Of a DNA stretch of 64,000 nucleotides, positions 41,028 to 48,463 are shown piece after piece. The stretch is from NCBI GenBank assembly GCA_023515725.1, contig JALDTO010000192.1, forward strand, positions 372,001-436,000. Direction: 5' to 3'. The notes under the pieces were generated by a model. The model was given only the letters and a program-made list of their open reading frames with translations, had not been told where the DNA came from and searched no databases. Position numbers and translations under genes: made by a program. How positions within the stretch are numbered: position 1 is the first letter of the stretch; every line of letters begins with the position of its first letter. The DNA is from Amoeboaphelidium protococcarum X5. Lineage: Eukaryota > Fungi > Aphelidiomycota.

Positions 41028-43394
41028 TCATTTGCGTTTAAACTGCTTTAGTTCTATCGGTGCCGGAAGTTGTGCGCGTATCATATCCCACGGACGCTCC
41101 ACCATTACACTTTTCAGTTCACTTTTAGTTGATCCCAGATTCTGGACGTCAAAATATAGCAGATTGCTGAGATCGTGCTTCCAGCTAAAGCATTCTTCGT
41201 ACAGATCTGATGAAATATCAGAGTTGCCGGTTTTACGGATCATTTTAAAGATTTAATCAACACCAACGCGACAAATCCACTTATGCGAATAGATATAGAG
41301 GCAATTACGCCGATTCTCTACTGACGATAACGCACCCACAATCTATTCTCTCCTTTTAATGAGCATCTTGTAGCTGTTTAAAACTTTATTCAACTCCACC
41401 ATTAGCTTTCCCTTCTCCAAGTCAAAAAGATGGAATTTATATAGACCATTTGATGTTCTTTAACTGAGCAGCATTCCATACTAACACAATTTAGAGTACT
41501 TGGTTGACGCCAGAGAGAAATTATAAGCACCGTCAACACAGCCATCTTATAAAAGAGAACTAACGCGATCCCTCACTTTTGCAAATTTTGAATAAGGTTT
41601 AGACTTGGTTAAATCACGTATCTCAATAGCTGTGTTCAGCCCAATTCTAACTAAAAATCTATTTCCAATGACACTTGCACAACGAGAGCTACACATGACA
41701 CTGCTAAACTCAAACTCAGATTTAACAGAGCCATCTTATAAGCAAAGACAACTAGATTGACCCTCTTGAGAGGTGACTATAATTCCGACATTATCAACAA
41801 AGAATATCCTTTCAATTTGGCCACTCACTGATTGTTACCACAATTTGTTCATGTAATATTGACCATTTTCAGAAAACAACTTGAACAGTATCACTTTATT
41901 TGTATAAGCAACAGCGATAAATTCCAATTACTCTGAGGCACAAGCATCGACAGGAGTTTAGTTTAATGTCAATTTACATACAAACTTGCAATCAGACTTT
42001 GTGGGCACAAAGCCAACGTCCTCGCCATGCTAATGCGCAACACCCAATGAATACACTTGTATTTGTTAATCAATTAAAGAAATGAGCAAATTACTTTGAG
42101 CACTGAAGAACGTTTTGTATCTACCACTAGAAAATGACGCGATTCTTGCAGGCTACACACAGGATTATATAAACTTTGATTGAGGACTATTTAGAATTGT
42201 GAGCATAGTATCAACACCACCACTAATAAACGCATCGTAAATAAGAGGATTCACACTATCCTTACCTGCTTGTGCAGTCAGTTTTCTCTTATTACCAGAA
42301 TTACTGCTCATAGATGGGCTGAATAAGCGACCAGACACTTGCAACCATTCAATTGCATAAATGTCATGAGTGTGCAACTTTCTAGAGACCAATTTTTAAT
42401 ACGGCGTACTGCCAGCACCATCAACATAGTTATGTAGCGCAATCTTCCCTTCCATGCCACAGCTTACAAAGGACTTTCTATCTAAGGTACTGGATAACGC
42501 GACAACTGCTCCGACATGCGCCTCGATCAAACTTTGCACCAACGTACCCGTTACTAAATCCCATATTCTGATATTGCCCATAGAGTCACCAGCGGCAAAC
42601 AACTACTCATCTTCGTCACATTTCAGCTGGGTTAAGCATAATATAGCTGGAGAATGACGGTCACCTGCTCCATGGGATGATTAAGATGCCAACTTGAACA
42701 GCTCAACCTGCCTCCCTTCAATTCCATCATACACTCTAATGATACCATTATCACCACCGACTAGAACGCGCCACTGAGAATCACTATCAGCATTTACATA
42801 GTCGCGGGACTATTCACAAGCAAGCGGAATAGTCATACTAGCCAAGCAAGTTAGCTGCTCATTGACAGGATCAAATGATCTCAAGTACTCAAAGGTGGGC
42901 AATCCCATCTCATTATACAAGGTCAAATCGTACGTGCGTATATAACCATTCTAAAAGCCAGCAATTAAATACTTTTATGATGGTGATACTGCAAGCCCAC
43001 ATATTTCACCACCTGAATTTAAAATTACAGTTCTCTTTAGAGATTTTATAGCGCCATCCTAAGAAGGAAGAGTAAACTCTGCAATCGAGCCATCTGAATA
43101 CCCAACGAATAATCTCGCAATTATACGATTCATTATCACGAATTATTACACCGCTGCACTATCACTTTGTTAAGCATCAACTTTGCAGTCATCTTCATTA
43201 TCTTCATCAGCTTCGGAGTCAGTGGTAGTATCATGACCAACACGCTAACCACCGTGCTATGCAGAGGAAAATGGCTAAAATTCCCACAATGACCAATGCA
43301 ATGCGGTAATCTTCTTATTCTGATCTCCCTGTACGCGATAACGACATACTCCACTAGTGCCATCGACCATAATATTTTTGCTATTATTATTCAT
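41028..43394 (-). CDS. UTP4: U3 snoRNP WD40 protein Utp4/cirhin
   Basis: WD repeats (AGDSMGNIRIWD, HTHDIYAI, ISGGVDTML) and C-terminal VMVERPWDMIRAQLPAPIELKQF. Confidence 0.82.
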
Positions 43395-43630
43395 CAGTTA
43401 TCCATGAGACTCTGACGTTAATACAATGCTCTTATTGTTAAAAGTGCAAAGTGCAAAAACGGAAACCGTTAAGGTTGACGTTGGAAGAATGCGCGAGCGA
43501 TCGAGCGCGCGACGGTGATCTCGCAGAAAACAGACAAGTCAGTTGTTTCAAACAAATCCTCAATGATTTTGCATTAAACTTTTTGTATTAAATCCACTTT
43601 CAATCTCAGTCTCCATATTATCTGTCTTGT

Positions 43631-46063
43631 TCAAATACTACACTCATCCATGGTACCAGAGCAATTGTTTGTCTTGAAGCTAGTTGGTTTGAAGTTCCCC
43701 CAATGTGCGATGAACTTATCCAAATCACCGCCAAAGTGCTTTCTCAGACATTTCATGATCGGGCAGTATTGCTTCACGTAGAATGATTTGGCGCCAGCTG
43801 ATAACCCGACGGTTGAGCCAGGATCATCCACTGCAAGAATGGCCTCCAACTTCGCCATGGCAGTCTTCGCTTTTCTCACTTTCTCTCTCCCAGGCATATC
43901 ATTCACAACTTCATCCTACTGAACAGCTGTGATGGCAGGTACAACATCAGCTACGTCAGTGTCTTCTTCATCGGATTCATAGAGTTCATCATCAGAGTGA
44001 ACCGCAGCTTGTTCACGTAACTATCTGGAAGAAGATTATTGAGAAGTCAGAGTAGATTTTGGCTACTTCAACTTAGCTGATTGAGTGGCAGCAATCAATC
44101 CATTCGCATAAAGCTCAAGCATCCTACGCAGCTCATTAATCTCCTCCGGAGTGGCATTAGGTGCAATTTCTTTCAACTTTGCCTCAATAAGCTGCAGCAC
44201 AGTCTCTTTCTTCTGCAACTGGAGAAGTGCATCGTAAATCACTCTAGGTCCACCAACTGCATCAACATCAGATAATCCACATAAGCTACGAACAATCTCT
44301 TGACTCACCTGCTGCAGACAAAAATTGCCTCTAGAATGGGCAGCATTCAGACTGCGAGCCATCTATAGCTACTCACAGTAGGCTGATCTGAATTTGCTTA
44401 CCACGGAAGACACGTCCAAACGTCTAGTCTTCGCTAATTCTAGCAAATAGCTAGCATCCTTCTTATACAATGCGGCATTAGCGGACGAAGCGTGTCGCGC
44501 ACTCTTAGTGATGTCAATCTCTGATCCCATTCCCCAAACAGCAAGCAAATAGCCAGTCTTCCTACTAGTGTGCGTACCAAATTTACCATCGGGATTGCCG
44601 GTAGCAATCTTACAAGCTTTCTGATACTGCCTATGATAAGATACGTAAGAGATGTTGTACGCCGCATGCCCAACTTGCTTCACAGCATCCAGTGTACTCT
44701 CTTGAGGGAACAAGAATCCAGTTCTAATCCCAGAAATAAAAATCCACGTCAAAAGCGCACGAACCGGGCACAATTCGGGCACATCATAATCCGTCCAAAG
44801 AGTCAAGCACACTCTAACACGATCAGACTTGCCTTTAATGTAGAAAGCAAGGGAAGATATACTGCCATCACTTTGAAAGGTCGCAAGATCCTTGTTGAGA
44901 CAATTTTCCAGCCTAGGATCATGAATTTTCAAATCGGTGACTTCATCATTGCGCAGAAATAGCTTGATACTAACGATAATCATCGTCCACATCATGAATG
45001 ACTTCGCATCATTTTTCGAGATGAAATACTCGCGGAGACGTAGTAATTCCCAAGGTGTGAGCGGCTAGCTGCCTTCGGACACGTAGCTGCATCCATCGCG
45101 GGAGTTCAATCTCTACATGTTAGTCATGAGGGAAGAATTCTTTGGATCTCCACCCAGCCAAATACGAGGAGCCATCGGATGGAACCGACAGCCAGATCTA
45201 TCACCACGCTCAGAACGTTGGATGCACTCTTCGCAGATATCTCTGTACTCCCCCCTCTAATTACGACTATCATGCAGCACAGAGACAGCCGATAACAACT
45301 GGTCAACATTCTGTGGCATATTCCAACCACCCTAGCACTTGATATCGTGCCCATAGACACATTTCACAGCGTTGCCATTCTCGTCTTTTAGCAAAGAACC
45401 CTTCTCATTACGCTTGAACTTGATAAACAAAATGATGCTCTTGGCGTTCATTGACGGTGTGTACTGCGGGGGGTTAGGAAGCAGCATTAAACTCGAGCTG
45501 TAGTCACCAATTAGCGCAAAAAAGTACCGCAATCCTCTGTAATGCTTCTAGTAGGCTTACATACTATTCACAGCCAAAGGCCTACCGCCAGTGAGTGGCA
45601 CAGATACGTCGGATCGAGTCAACCTCAGCAGCTTCAACGTCTCTCCAATGCCTTCATCCAGCTTATACTTGTACGCCGCTTCAATGCGATACACATGGCT
45701 GTTCTCCGACTTCTTGCGTCTCTTCACCTTCTTCGCCAACTGCTCATCATCCAGACCATCATCAGAGTCGTAATCGTCGTCGTCATCTTCATCTTCATTC
45801 TCCAGCTACCTATTGAAAGCAGCACTGACTTGAGCAGAACTTTGTGAAGTGATATCAGCAGTTTGATTCATGCTAACAACACTTGTTTCAGCCTCGCACC
45901 CAGCCAGACCAGAACTTGAGGAGGCGGATACGCCGACACTACTGCCAACACCAGCACACTCATCAACGGCTGGGATGCCAGTACTACTGTTGGAGGTGGT
46001 GATACCACCTCCAGATGGCTACGAGTCACTCTACACTGCTCTAGAACGCTTCCTGCCAGACAT
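43631..46063 (-). mobile_element. Intact Crypton-like tyrosine recombinase gene (810 aa), transposon-derived or domesticated
   Basis: Single TGA-free frame; catalytic set FLRNDE (R), KGKSD (K), THTSRKTG (HxxR), ARH (H), AALY (Y), plus the CPV motif. No RT, gag or capsid ORF adjacent. Confidence 0.85.
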
Positions 46064-46216
46064 GCGAGACGGTCGAGATTGTAACAAAGCGAGTTCGGTG
46101 CGTTTCTCCGGGTGCAAGGTGCAAAACACTACCGGTGCAAAAGAAAACAAGCGTTGTATTTTGTAAATAATTTTTATTAGATAGTCTGAACAGTATATTG
46201 AAGATATTTATACATC

Positions 46217-48463
46217 ATGCCTTCGTAATCTCCTATATAAATGACAGATACTAGGCCTATTTCGATTGTGAATTAATCCTCCTCTTAGCGGATCAAGCCA
46301 TTCTATGGCGATAAGGGGTCTGGAAGCATGGATAGCAGTATTTAATATCTGAATGATACTCTCTTTGCTATCAATCGGCCCCCTTTGCATGGATCTGGAT
46401 ATAATATGATGACCAATGGCAGCCGATCTGTCACTCCAGAAGGTATCAGAGGAAGTGAGGGTGGAATAGCTATGGCCATCAGGTAAAGATTTAATCAGCA
46501 CCTTAGTAGTAACTCCTAACGACACAGTGCCGATGATGGTGGGAATCGGCACTTGGACCATGACTCTTAATGGCATGATAATAAAAAGACACGTTCATCC
46601 GACAACTCCTCTAATTATGGGCTTGGTATCACTAGCGATAGATCATAATCGGAGAATAATAATGATGATGGCTTGTAGTAGTAGTAGCAGTAGTAATTAA
46701 AGCTTTAATCTATCTCGGAGTAGAGTCCTTTCATGCTTGATCCGTCTGATCGACATGGACGATCGAAGCTGATCCAGCCTCTGTCATTGCCAAACTCTTA
46801 GATATACCAGTCACCTAACCAGCCATTAGATGAATAATTGCGACGATGTTCGATGCCGGCATCATAATAAGCATTCAGAGTTCCTGTCAGGCGGATATCA
46901 TCTAATGGATCGAGAAATTGGCTTGGTGCCATTAGTTAAGGCTCGTGTTCTGCTCCCACGTCTAATCTGCAATAAAGTCCATCTACTCATTTTCCCTGTA
47001 TTGACGAAACTGCCTACTCCTCACTCCCACCATCGCCAGCTATCTCATTCCTGGGTCATCTGGCTGGTGTCACCTCTGCCCCATCCACTCTCAGTCGCGA
47101 TTATTTGAATAACAGTGGTAGCATGAATAATAGCGGCACTGATGCAAGAAGTATCTAATGGGAAAATGTTTCTATCGGTGACTTGTCTATCAGTAAGAAG
47201 ATTGGCTCCGGTAATTTCAGTCAAGTGTATGATGGTGTCTGGCGTGGCCAGAATGTGGCTGTAAAGATTGTATAAAGGAAACGAATGACTGACCTCAACA
47301 AAAAGCCATGTTATCAATCTACAGCCTAATAAAGTCCTTCCAGTGATCAGAGCTCACCATCCCAGTCTCGATCGGCTGCTGGAAAGGAGAATTATATCAC
47401 CTCCACCACAGGCGTATTTTCTGCATCTCCTAATACGTCGCCAGTTGCGAATAATACAGGCAGTGATGAGCAGAAAGCATAAATGTCTGAAGTTGTTACA
47501 GAGATGGAAGAAGATGATTTGTTCTATCGTGAGTTATCTTTGTGGAAATCATTGTCTCATCCGAATATTGTGCCTCTGCTGGATATCATCGAGTTTGATG
47601 AACAGAATCTACTTCTGGTGATGGAAATATGCAAACAAGGCTAGCTGTTGACTTATATCAATGAACACCCAAATGGACTGACTGAAGACATTGCCAAGTA
47701 CATATTTCGGGATATTGTATCTGCTGTATCTTATCTCCATAGCAAGTAGATTGTTCACCGTGATATTAAACCGGAGAATGTGTTTCTCGACTTTGATGCT
47801 AGTGGTAAGTTGGTGGCCAGGTTGGGTGACTTTTCTCTCAGTGAAAGATTCCAGCTGATTGATCCATTGACTACTGATAGCAATGGTAATGCCACTCACG
47901 TAGGTACACCAAAAAACAGATACGGTTGTGAGTGTAAAGACATTGATTAGATTCTGGAAGCTGGCGGTGTAGGTTCTCTTGAGTACGCGTCACCAGAAGA
48001 GTTGGATCATTCATTTCTTCATCCACAAGAAGGTAGAAGTAATCTACAGTCTCTATACACTTATCCATCTCCCACTAGTGATTTATGGTCTCTTGGCGTA
48101 ACTTTGTATGTTATGCTCTGTAATCAACTACCATTCTGCGATGTCTATGGTCCGCGTTGCCAATTGAAAATCTTATCTGGATGTTACAAGCGACTTCGCT
48201 CTTCCACCTCAGAATACTCATTAACCAGTCCTAATCAGTAATCGTGCGGCTCACAATCATTCGGCTCATCATCATTGAGTTCTTCATTCAATAATCCATC
48301 GTTGAATACACGTAGCTTTCTGGAGAATGGCAGAACTTATAGTAAAGACGTGGTGGATTTGCTGGATGGAATGCTCAGTGTCAATGTTTACAAGCGATTA
48401 AGCGTGGAAGATGTAATGCAATGCCAGTGGCTTGGTAATAATAATAAATTTGCTCAAGAATGA
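46217..48463 (+). CDS. Ser/Thr protein kinase, fungal Nnk1-like
   Basis: IGSGNFSQV, VAVKIV, HRDIKPEN, LGDFSLS, GSLEYASPE, SDLWSLGVTLY, YGPRCQLKILSG; N-terminal polyQ TAG TAG TAG TAG CAG TAG TAA. Confidence 0.88.

Follow-up and report, generated by a model that had tools for sequence, protein, structure and literature searches.

A Crypton-like tyrosine recombinase and its multicopy element in the aphelid Amoeboaphelidium protococcarum X5

Is a tyrosine recombinase (YR) gene that sits between a kinase gene and another predicted gene a domesticated part of the host genome or the only gene of a mobile element? This question is raised by a 64,000-nt stretch of DNA from the aphelid Amoeboaphelidium protococcarum X5 (GenBank assembly GCA_023515725.1, contig JALDTO010000192.1, positions 372,001 to 436,000), referred to below as the window; unless a contig is named, coordinates are those of the window. 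A preliminary description, made from the sequence alone, recognized on its minus strand a Crypton-like YR and left two possibilities: a Crypton lineage long adapted to a genetic code in which TAA and TAG (TAR) stand for Gln, or a site-specific recombinase that has been domesticated, lies embedded in the manner of a host gene, and retains its activity. The analysis described here indicates that the gene is, very probably, the recombinase of a young multicopy DNA transposon of the Crypton type, i.e., one that encodes only a YR. The first of the two possibilities fits this evidence, and the second is considered below at each point where the data bear on it.

The recombinase gene and its genetic code

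The gene and its catalytic domain are located as follows.
43631..46063, minus strand: single open reading frame (ORF) comprising 810 sense codons and a TGA, in which TAR stands for Gln 15 times; the encoded protein is identical in 20 of the 20 copies compared
44372..45064, minus strand: YR catalytic domain, residues 334 to 564, recognized by an AlphaFold2 (AF2) model, a Foldseek search, and conserved residues

The six ORF fragments that had been joined into one 810-aa frame do form a single frame, which runs from 46063 down to 43631 and consists of 810 sense codons and the terminal TGA. There are no internal TGA codons. At least 12 in-frame TAR codons had been reported; the actual number is 15 (13 TAG and 2 TAA), so that TAR accounts for 15 of the 39 Gln codons of this ORF. 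Two of them, at positions 244 and 269, fall in well-aligned columns, where Gln is the commonest residue in the homologs from other organisms (14 of 53 and 26 of 53 sequences, respectively, with a background of 3.8%). TAA and TAG are read as Gln in the host genome. All searches were run on stop-free pieces of the protein, with the table 6 read-through confined to local scripts.

The AF2 model of residues 334 to 564 has a pLDDT of 96.8 and a pTM of 0.93. When this model was compared to the PDB with Foldseek, the fold check suggested in the preliminary description, tyrosine recombinases made up 50 of the top 50 matches. The matches with E values of ≤0.001 numbered 37, with template modeling (TM) scores by query of 0.47 to 0.61, and the proteins matched include XerH (5jjv; E value of 5.6e-6), Cre/Tre, XerA, lambda Int, Tn1549 Int, and an integrase from methicillin-resistant Staphylococcus aureus (MRSA). 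The full set of YR catalytic residues had been reported as present, and the same six residues, Arg371, Lys412, His498, Arg501, His524, and Tyr533, occupy invariant or ≥90% conserved columns in an alignment of 37 family members; in the AF2 model, Lys412 is placed between two predicted strands. The R-23-H-9-Y spacing presumably fits that in Cre and XerD. Sequence conservation, the predicted fold, and the anatomy of the surrounding element all support the recognition of this gene as a catalytically intact Crypton-like tyrosine recombinase.

Copies and ends of the element

A search of the 23.6-Mb genome (346 contigs) with the 231-aa catalytic piece (residues 334 to 564) detected 21 places on 16 contigs with 100% identity, as well as one 40%-identical paralog and three degraded fragments. 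A count of genomic copies had been proposed as a check on domestication, and the 21 near-identical dispersed copies speak against it. Comparison by BLAST of the 10-kb regions around the other copies revealed, in 19 fully flanked copies, an element of 2,758 bp with sharp shared ends, which starts with TGTATCTGAC and ends with AAGAGCATT. The flanks of these copies are unrelated to each other except for small shared repeats. A single polymorphic site (T/G, 15:5 among 20 copies) was found in the whole shared block; this polymorphism is synonymous, given that the 810-aa protein does not differ between any of the 20 copies. Given that at least 21 copies share just one polymorphic site, this Crypton family is very young and is probably still active in this strain.

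The element contains one ORF, at element bases 120 to 2552. A repeat search of the element detected no terminal inverted repeats (TIRs) and no long direct repeats, and neither this search nor Pfam searches with pieces of the element revealed reverse transcriptase (RT), gag, RNase H, DDE, or methyltransferase sequences or a split direct repeat, in agreement with the earlier remark that no RT or gag of the DIRS type is visible. The accompanying statement that terminal repeats are missing holds for TIRs and long terminal repeats but overlooked a 6-bp core repeat, described in the next section, and two sets of subterminal repeats:
46112..46140, minus strand: 5' subterminal set, three direct repeats of TTGCAC, candidate recombinase-binding sites
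43444..43459, minus strand: 3' subterminal set, two direct repeats of TTGCAC in the same orientation as the 5' set

The TTGCAC hexamer is found six times on the gene strand and not once on the other strand, with 0.58 occurrences expected per strand. Five of these six occurrences are within ∼70 bp of the element ends, three at element bases 43 to 71 and two at bases 2727 to 2739.

This anatomy also bears on the assignment of the element to some other YR-containing group, such as a remnant of a DIRS or Ngaro retroelement, a YR-encoding virus or plasmid that has become integrated, or the “captain” end of a larger Starship-type element with cargo. The phylogeny of YRs is poorly resolved and “Crypton” is not a monophyletic group (PMC3212892, PMC13465315), which leaves room for such an assignment. 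It is very improbable, nonetheless, for a unit that is no longer than 2,758 bp, contains a single ORF, has identical ends in 19 copies, and carries none of the RT, RNase H, methyltransferase, split direct repeat, or inverted terminal repeat sequences listed above. DUF3435 was not matched by the window pieces or by the family members, and the sequences beyond the ends are unrelated between the copies.

Target sites and empty sites

Alignment of the 19 copies at their ends revealed a left flank consensus R(-9) T A W N N N N T(-1) and a right flank consensus D(+1) T A Y Y. The residues R -9, T -8, A -7, D +1, T +2, A +3, and Y +4 are present in 19 of the 19 copies and T -1 in 18, which gives the insertion site consensus RTAWNNNNT-T-DTAY. 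The sequence TTGTAT at the left junction and TTDTAY at the right one form a short imperfect terminal direct repeat. Cryptons have been described as having no TIRs or target site duplications and as carrying 4- to 6-bp terminal direct repeats that match the target (PMC3212892, PMC13465315).

Empty sites, each with a single core, were seen at two homeologous positions (on contigs C235 and C156) and in the public runs X8 and X5; the public runs were available as assembled contigs, among them one RNA run with ∼7% of the words. On the homeologous contig C235, the counterpart of the flank on the side of the downstream gene (labeled UTP4 in the preliminary description), at 258087-260090, and the counterpart of the upstream flank of the copy on contig C57, at 256107-258080, are 6 nt apart. 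This is the distance to be expected of an empty site at which one shared T divides the two flanks. In a contig from run X8, window positions 43391-43424 are joined directly to the same C57 upstream flank with zero mismatches. On the homeologous contig C156, 1 nt separates the counterpart of the downstream flank of the C57 copy from that of the upstream flank of the copy on contig C135. Since the flanks fit each other in these empty sites, the target has the form ...RTAWNNNN-TTDTAY..., and the insertion adds 2,757 bp without any duplication. A comparison of homeologs and strains for empty sites had been named as another check on domestication; the exact empty sites in homeologs and other runs contradict the view of this gene as a long-standing resident of its locus.

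Positions 3 and 6 of the core are occupied by the element's G and T at every left junction and by the target's own bases at every right junction in all 19 copies. The effective crossover is therefore in the TT dinucleotide. A mechanism that follows Goodwin's Crypton model can be proposed, in which the recombinase would bind the element ends and the element would be excised, or copied, as a 2,757-bp circle with the junction GCA-TTGTAT-CTG. The core of this circle would then recombine with chromosomal TTDTAY sites that bear RTA eight bases upstream, with an effective crossover in TT and no target site duplication. The D and Y of the target would stay at the right junction, and the GTAT of the element would always end up at the left one. 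A single palindromic RTA-Nx-TAY core shared by the target and the circle junction was considered and rejected, as the spacers differ (8 and 9 nt, respectively); no cleavage positions are claimed.

Two of the copies, L028 and L040, are followed on the 3' side of the element by ∼110 nt that belong to members of another short repeat with the palindrome CCTCAAAGGTG...CACCTTTGAGA. The insertions in these two repeats are 5 nt apart, at GTAT and at TTAT, and are consistent with a DTAY target choice.

The target motif is also relevant to the suggestion that the repeats arose as an artefact of assembly or by segmental duplication and not by transposition. Twenty practically identical copies are unusual, one contig (C203; 2,575 bp) consists of the element sequence only, some other contigs start inside the element, and certain flank pairs look mis-threaded. 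Such an origin is nevertheless extremely improbable, given that the flanks on either side differ from copy to copy, the ends are base-exact, and the target motif is strongly nonrandom. Furthermore, independent runs yield unitigs that terminate at these ends and have other flanks attached, and the ratio of element to flank word depth is much lower in the runs deposited under other organism labels.

The window copy and its neighborhood

The copy in the window differs from the canonical element at one of its two ends.
43425..46153, minus strand: window copy of the element, element bases 30 to 2758, from BLAST comparison with 19 other copies and comparison with the homeologs
43421..43426, minus strand: 3' junction core TTGTAT (the last element bases, TT, plus GTAT of the flank), a canonical right junction, with the empty form seen in C235 and X8
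46153..46154, minus strand: aberrant 5' junction, lacking the 5' core TGTAT, with the kinase-side flank joined directly to element base 30, from comparison of copies and homeologs

The canonical bases 1 to 29, including the 5' core, are gone from this copy. According to the homeolog of the kinase-side flank, L046 (G000:C241:7346-11238), the sequence ...ACAAAATACAA belongs to the flank and the element begins at CGCTTG. Since the sequence AAATACAA at the 5' junction is also found in this homeolog, the copy can be taken to span positions 43425-46153, with a secondary 5' junction, the outcome of a deletion or rearrangement. The window copy can probably provide the recombinase, but the canonical reaction cannot excise the copy itself.

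Beyond the kinase flank, the last 391 nt of contig C241 have no other match in the genome, after which this 11-kb contig ends; the counterpart of these 391 nt seems to be deleted in the subgenome that is represented by the window. An empty site on contig C241 that would belong to the window copy was also considered, since ∼60 nt past the junction could be aligned loosely with the UTP4-side flank. The BLAST match was not significant, and the true partner of the UTP4-side flank is the upstream flank of the C57 copy, so this reading fails on both counts.

The divergent gene on the other side, described previously as a kinase with its ATG 153 bp away, indeed starts at 46217, 153 bp off, and two of its pieces match the Pkinase domain (E values of 3e-6 and 4.5e-6). 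The downstream frame starts at ∼43370-43394; its UTP4 label is unconfirmed, as two pieces had no Pfam match. The neighborhood of the kinase and this next gene is not ancestral, because the UTP4-side flank originally adjoined a sequence that is now on contig C57. The recombinase came to occupy its gene-like position by insertion, after which the 5' junction underwent a secondary event.

These observations deprive the idea of a domesticated, active site-specific recombinase, present as a single-copy host gene between the kinase and the next gene, of nearly all its probability. Its attraction came from the intact ORF, the host-like codon usage (including TAR as Gln), and the short 153-bp distance from the divergent kinase start, and the lack of a 5' recombination end in the window copy would be in keeping with it as well. 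However, the embedded, host-like appearance noted earlier has to be reconciled with 21 copies at 100% protein identity, all with their own ends and unique flanks, with empty sites in homeologs and in other runs, and with a kinase-flank homeolog (C241) that has no such gene. In addition, the sequence of the window copy is the same as that of the mobile copies and so bears no sign of independent evolution.

Other domains of the recombinase

Outside the catalytic domain, the following parts of the protein were delineated.
45710..45733, minus strand: basic patch KKVKRRKK, residues 111 to 118, following an acidic run; candidate nuclear import signal
45065..45703, minus strand: conserved N-terminal domain, residues 121 to 333, conserved in 121 of 161 retrieved relatives
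45179..45235, minus strand: C277-x2-C280-x11-C292-x2-H295, putative zinc-binding module, whose four residues are conserved in 100, 100, 100, and 96% of 54 relatives
43634..43915, minus strand: conserved C-terminal domain, residues 717 to 810, a five-helix module conserved in 70 to 80 relatives

The first 120 residues, with the basic patch that had already been pointed out and can now be placed at residues 111 to 118, and the linker at residues 565 to 716 are not conserved in the relatives. The N-terminal domain (residues 121 to 333) is probably responsible for DNA binding (core binding) by the recombinase. No match to it was found in Pfam or among the PDB sequences. An Atlas feature search with the homologous part of the relative P0005 gave matches to the QRICH1, ALOG, and Phage_int_SAM_1 clusters with scores of 0.91 to 0.94, which serve as a lead only; they suggest a YR core-binding domain that bears a metal-binding module. 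The C-x2-C...C-x2-H cluster that had been noticed ahead of the catalytic domain is real, as its conservation in the relatives attests.

The C-terminal domain retains the conserved residues Cys772, His776, and Cys801, and its AF2 model consists of five helices (pLDDT of 88.3). It has no Pfam match and no match among the PDB sequences, and the fold searches gave nothing convincing (E values above 5 with Foldseek against the PDB, a best Z score of 4.0 with VIA, and TM scores below 0.5 with Atlas). It is therefore not a GCR1_C domain, as had been surmised. The preliminary description treated the combination of a Zn-like cluster with an unrecognized C-terminal domain as unusual. This view has to be abandoned: both features are conserved across a large family of ∼700-aa proteins.

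Relatives and known systems

A profile search of 1.84 billion proteins with the catalytic piece and four relatives retrieved 1,275 cluster representatives, 313 of them at E values of ≤1e-30. Members of this family are typically 650 to 800 aa long, with the profile match at approximately residues 230 to 470, and share a three-domain layout: an N-terminal domain with the C2CH cluster, the YR domain, and a helical C-terminal domain. In Pfam searches with 37 family members, NDC10_II (best E value of 3.3e-4) and Phage_integrase (best E value of 0.0041) were each matched by 5 of the 37, in all cases weakly. NDC10_II is the Crypton-derived domain of yeast Ndc10. One member is annotated as “Tyr recombinase domain-containing protein,” and two database relatives are named “hypothetical protein [Amoeboaphelidium protococcarum].” The relatives come from oomycetes (Aphanomyces stellatus, A. 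astaci, and A. euteiches), from chytrids (Zopfochytrium, Chytridium, Physocladia, Irineochytrium, Rhizoclosmatium, Blyttiomyces, and Quaeritorhiza), and from Rozella allomycis, Plasmodiophora brassicae, the diatom Epithemia, and A. protococcarum itself, which has two further families.

One of these is a second Crypton family in the same genome, L022 (G000:C264:1093045-1096740), with a 40%-identical catalytic domain, the same three-domain layout, and TAR codons of its own; it is nearly identical to the database protein P0164 from A. protococcarum. A third family, P0166, is 34% identical and also carries the name of this species. Three weak matches in the genome, L023, L024, and L025 (C154:380992, C135:20951, and C179:505022, respectively), with 35 to 49% identity and internal TGA stops, are probably the remains of older Crypton copies, judging by these stops. 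Many of the metagenomic relatives (P0011, P0006, P0012, P0017, P0041, and others) are found on contigs of 2.3 to 3.3 kb, approximately one element long; contigs of this size are consistent with collapsed repeats or free circles.

In layout and host range, the closest described group is CryptonS, a likeness that is drawn from the published description, not from Repbase sequences, and does not establish membership. CryptonS elements are ∼2.8 to 3.7 kb long, have 5- to 6-bp terminal direct repeats, and are present in tens of copies per genome in oomycetes and a diatom; they lack GCR1_C and have a conserved C-terminal region (PMC3212892). The window family similarly combines a YR as the only enzyme, one long ORF, the absence of GCR1_C, a comparable length and copy number, and short terminal repeats; its conserved C-terminal domain may correspond to the CryptonS region, and relatives of the window protein are found in Aphanomyces species and in a diatom. 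In contrast to CryptonS, its hosts also include an aphelid, chytrids, Rozella, and Plasmodiophora; the CryptonS paper describes neither the Cys/His cluster nor how the C-terminal domain folds. Three 99.6%-identical copies of a related element from A. stellatus (L049:4830, L050:1016, and L051:731) start near ATGTATTC, with TA-rich sequence before it, which suggests that they share the TGTAT 5' core with the aphelid element; each of the three contigs breaks off within the A. stellatus element.

The fungal Cryptons (CryptonF), reportedly described by Goodwin et al. in 2003, and their derivatives Ndc10/Cbf2 and Gcr1 resemble the window family in having a YR only and no TIRs, and the weak NDC10_II matches in 5 of the 37 family members point in the same direction. 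Unlike CryptonF, the window family has neither GCR1_C nor DUF3435, and its C-terminal domain is different. The terminal repeats of CryptonF are likewise 6 bp long and often contain TA, as in CAGTAT and TTGRTA (PMC3212892).

Cre, XerH, XerA, XerD, and lambda Int share with the window protein the catalytic fold (TM scores by query of 0.55 to 0.61) and the full R-K-H-R-H-Y set, albeit at only 12 to 19% identity. In contrast to these proteins, the window recombinase carries a Cys/His cluster in an N-terminal domain of much greater size and is further extended by a long linker and an additional C-terminal domain; its target is a short degenerate motif, whereas theirs is a long specific site. The ALOG and QRICH1 domains are N-terminal DNA-binding domains of the YR type; ALOG has a zinc-ribbon insert, in which HxxxC and CxC motifs are located between helices 2 and 3 (PMC3537659). 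The window motif, CxxC-x11-CxxH, differs from it and is found near the end of the domain; the likeness to ALOG is a lead from the Atlas feature search, with no Pfam match.

Evidence against the Crypton assignment, and possible rearrangements at the copies

Several observations weigh against the assignment of this gene to a young and active Crypton. Pfam searches with seven stop-free pieces of the window gave nothing usable: no piece reached the Pfam threshold, and the gathering score of Phage_integrase (PF00589) was not attained by any of them. Likewise, none of the three domains (catalytic, N-terminal, and C-terminal) matched a PDB sequence in phmmer and profile searches. The missing PF00589 match is an effect of model sensitivity and does not contradict the fold. 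The identity of the copies could be inflated by assembly polishing, and the assembled contigs of the public runs contained no sign of a circular junction, an excision footprint, or a transcript. Random resolution of a 6- to 8-bp heteroduplex overlap does not fit the junction pattern, and the classical two-step YR exchange is not directly supported. The aphelid core TTGTAT is neither TATGG, the majority form of the CryptonS terminal repeats, nor TTACTG, which is found in a few of them (PMC3212892). Finally, in none of the four copies tested for this (in the window and on contigs C57, C135, and C264) do the flanks pair as one ancestral site:
C57:41063-51062: copy L026
C135:164896-174895: copy L041
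C264:978488-988487: copy L037
43421-43424 of the window: window copy

The window and C57 copies share one ancestral site, and the C57 and C135 copies share another one. For the C264 copy, the homeolog of the upstream flank continues into something other than the downstream flank. For three of the four copies, base-exact empty sites prove that the flanks are mismatched, the partner flanks now being located beside copies on other contigs. The mismatch of the flanks reflects either recombination between copies (translocations at Crypton copies) or mis-threading of identical 2.76-kb repeats by the assembler.

A near-identical element is present in runs deposited under several organism labels and in a biofilm metagenome. 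Word depths from the run contigs, which are not copy numbers, were compared over L026:3207-6964 with the following results.
X2 (possible source run): element depth of ∼3,500, flank depth of 55 to 61
X5: element depth of 160, flank depth of 69
X8: element depth of 34, flank depth of 21 to 41

The element-to-flank ratio of word depths is ∼57- to 60-fold in the possible source run, compared to 21 assembled copies, and ∼1- to 3-fold in the two other runs (∼2-fold in X5 and ∼1-fold in X8). Run X6 contains one 2,709-nt contig that is identical to the element and has no flank. Taken loosely, the word depths suggest a burst specific to the assembled strain, with more element DNA than is contained in the 21 assembled copies. 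That such a burst is under way in this strain and is also reshuffling its chromosomes appears possible but rather unlikely. If it were the case, dispersed Crypton copies would recombine through the recombinase itself or by homologous recombination, and the excess element depth could come from extrachromosomal circles. In any event, contigs joined across the element repeats need checking.

Significance

Cryptons are, to our knowledge, among the least understood eukaryotic transposons, with hardly any experimental studies of their transposition. Their ends are usually hard to define, as the copies are few and old. The architecture of the element described here is not novel; what is new is a young Crypton family with unusually well-resolved ends and target. 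About 20 identical copies with base-exact ends, a 14-bp motif RTA-N8-TAY (crossover in TT), and matched empty sites provide ready substrates for recombination assays. Because of the in-frame TAR codons read as Gln, gene callers that use the standard code would miss or fragment the recombinase gene. The window protein also exposes a large family of ∼700-aa proteins (1,275 clusters), which is unannotated in Pfam and extends over oomycetes, chytrids, Rozella, Plasmodiophora, a diatom, and aphelids.

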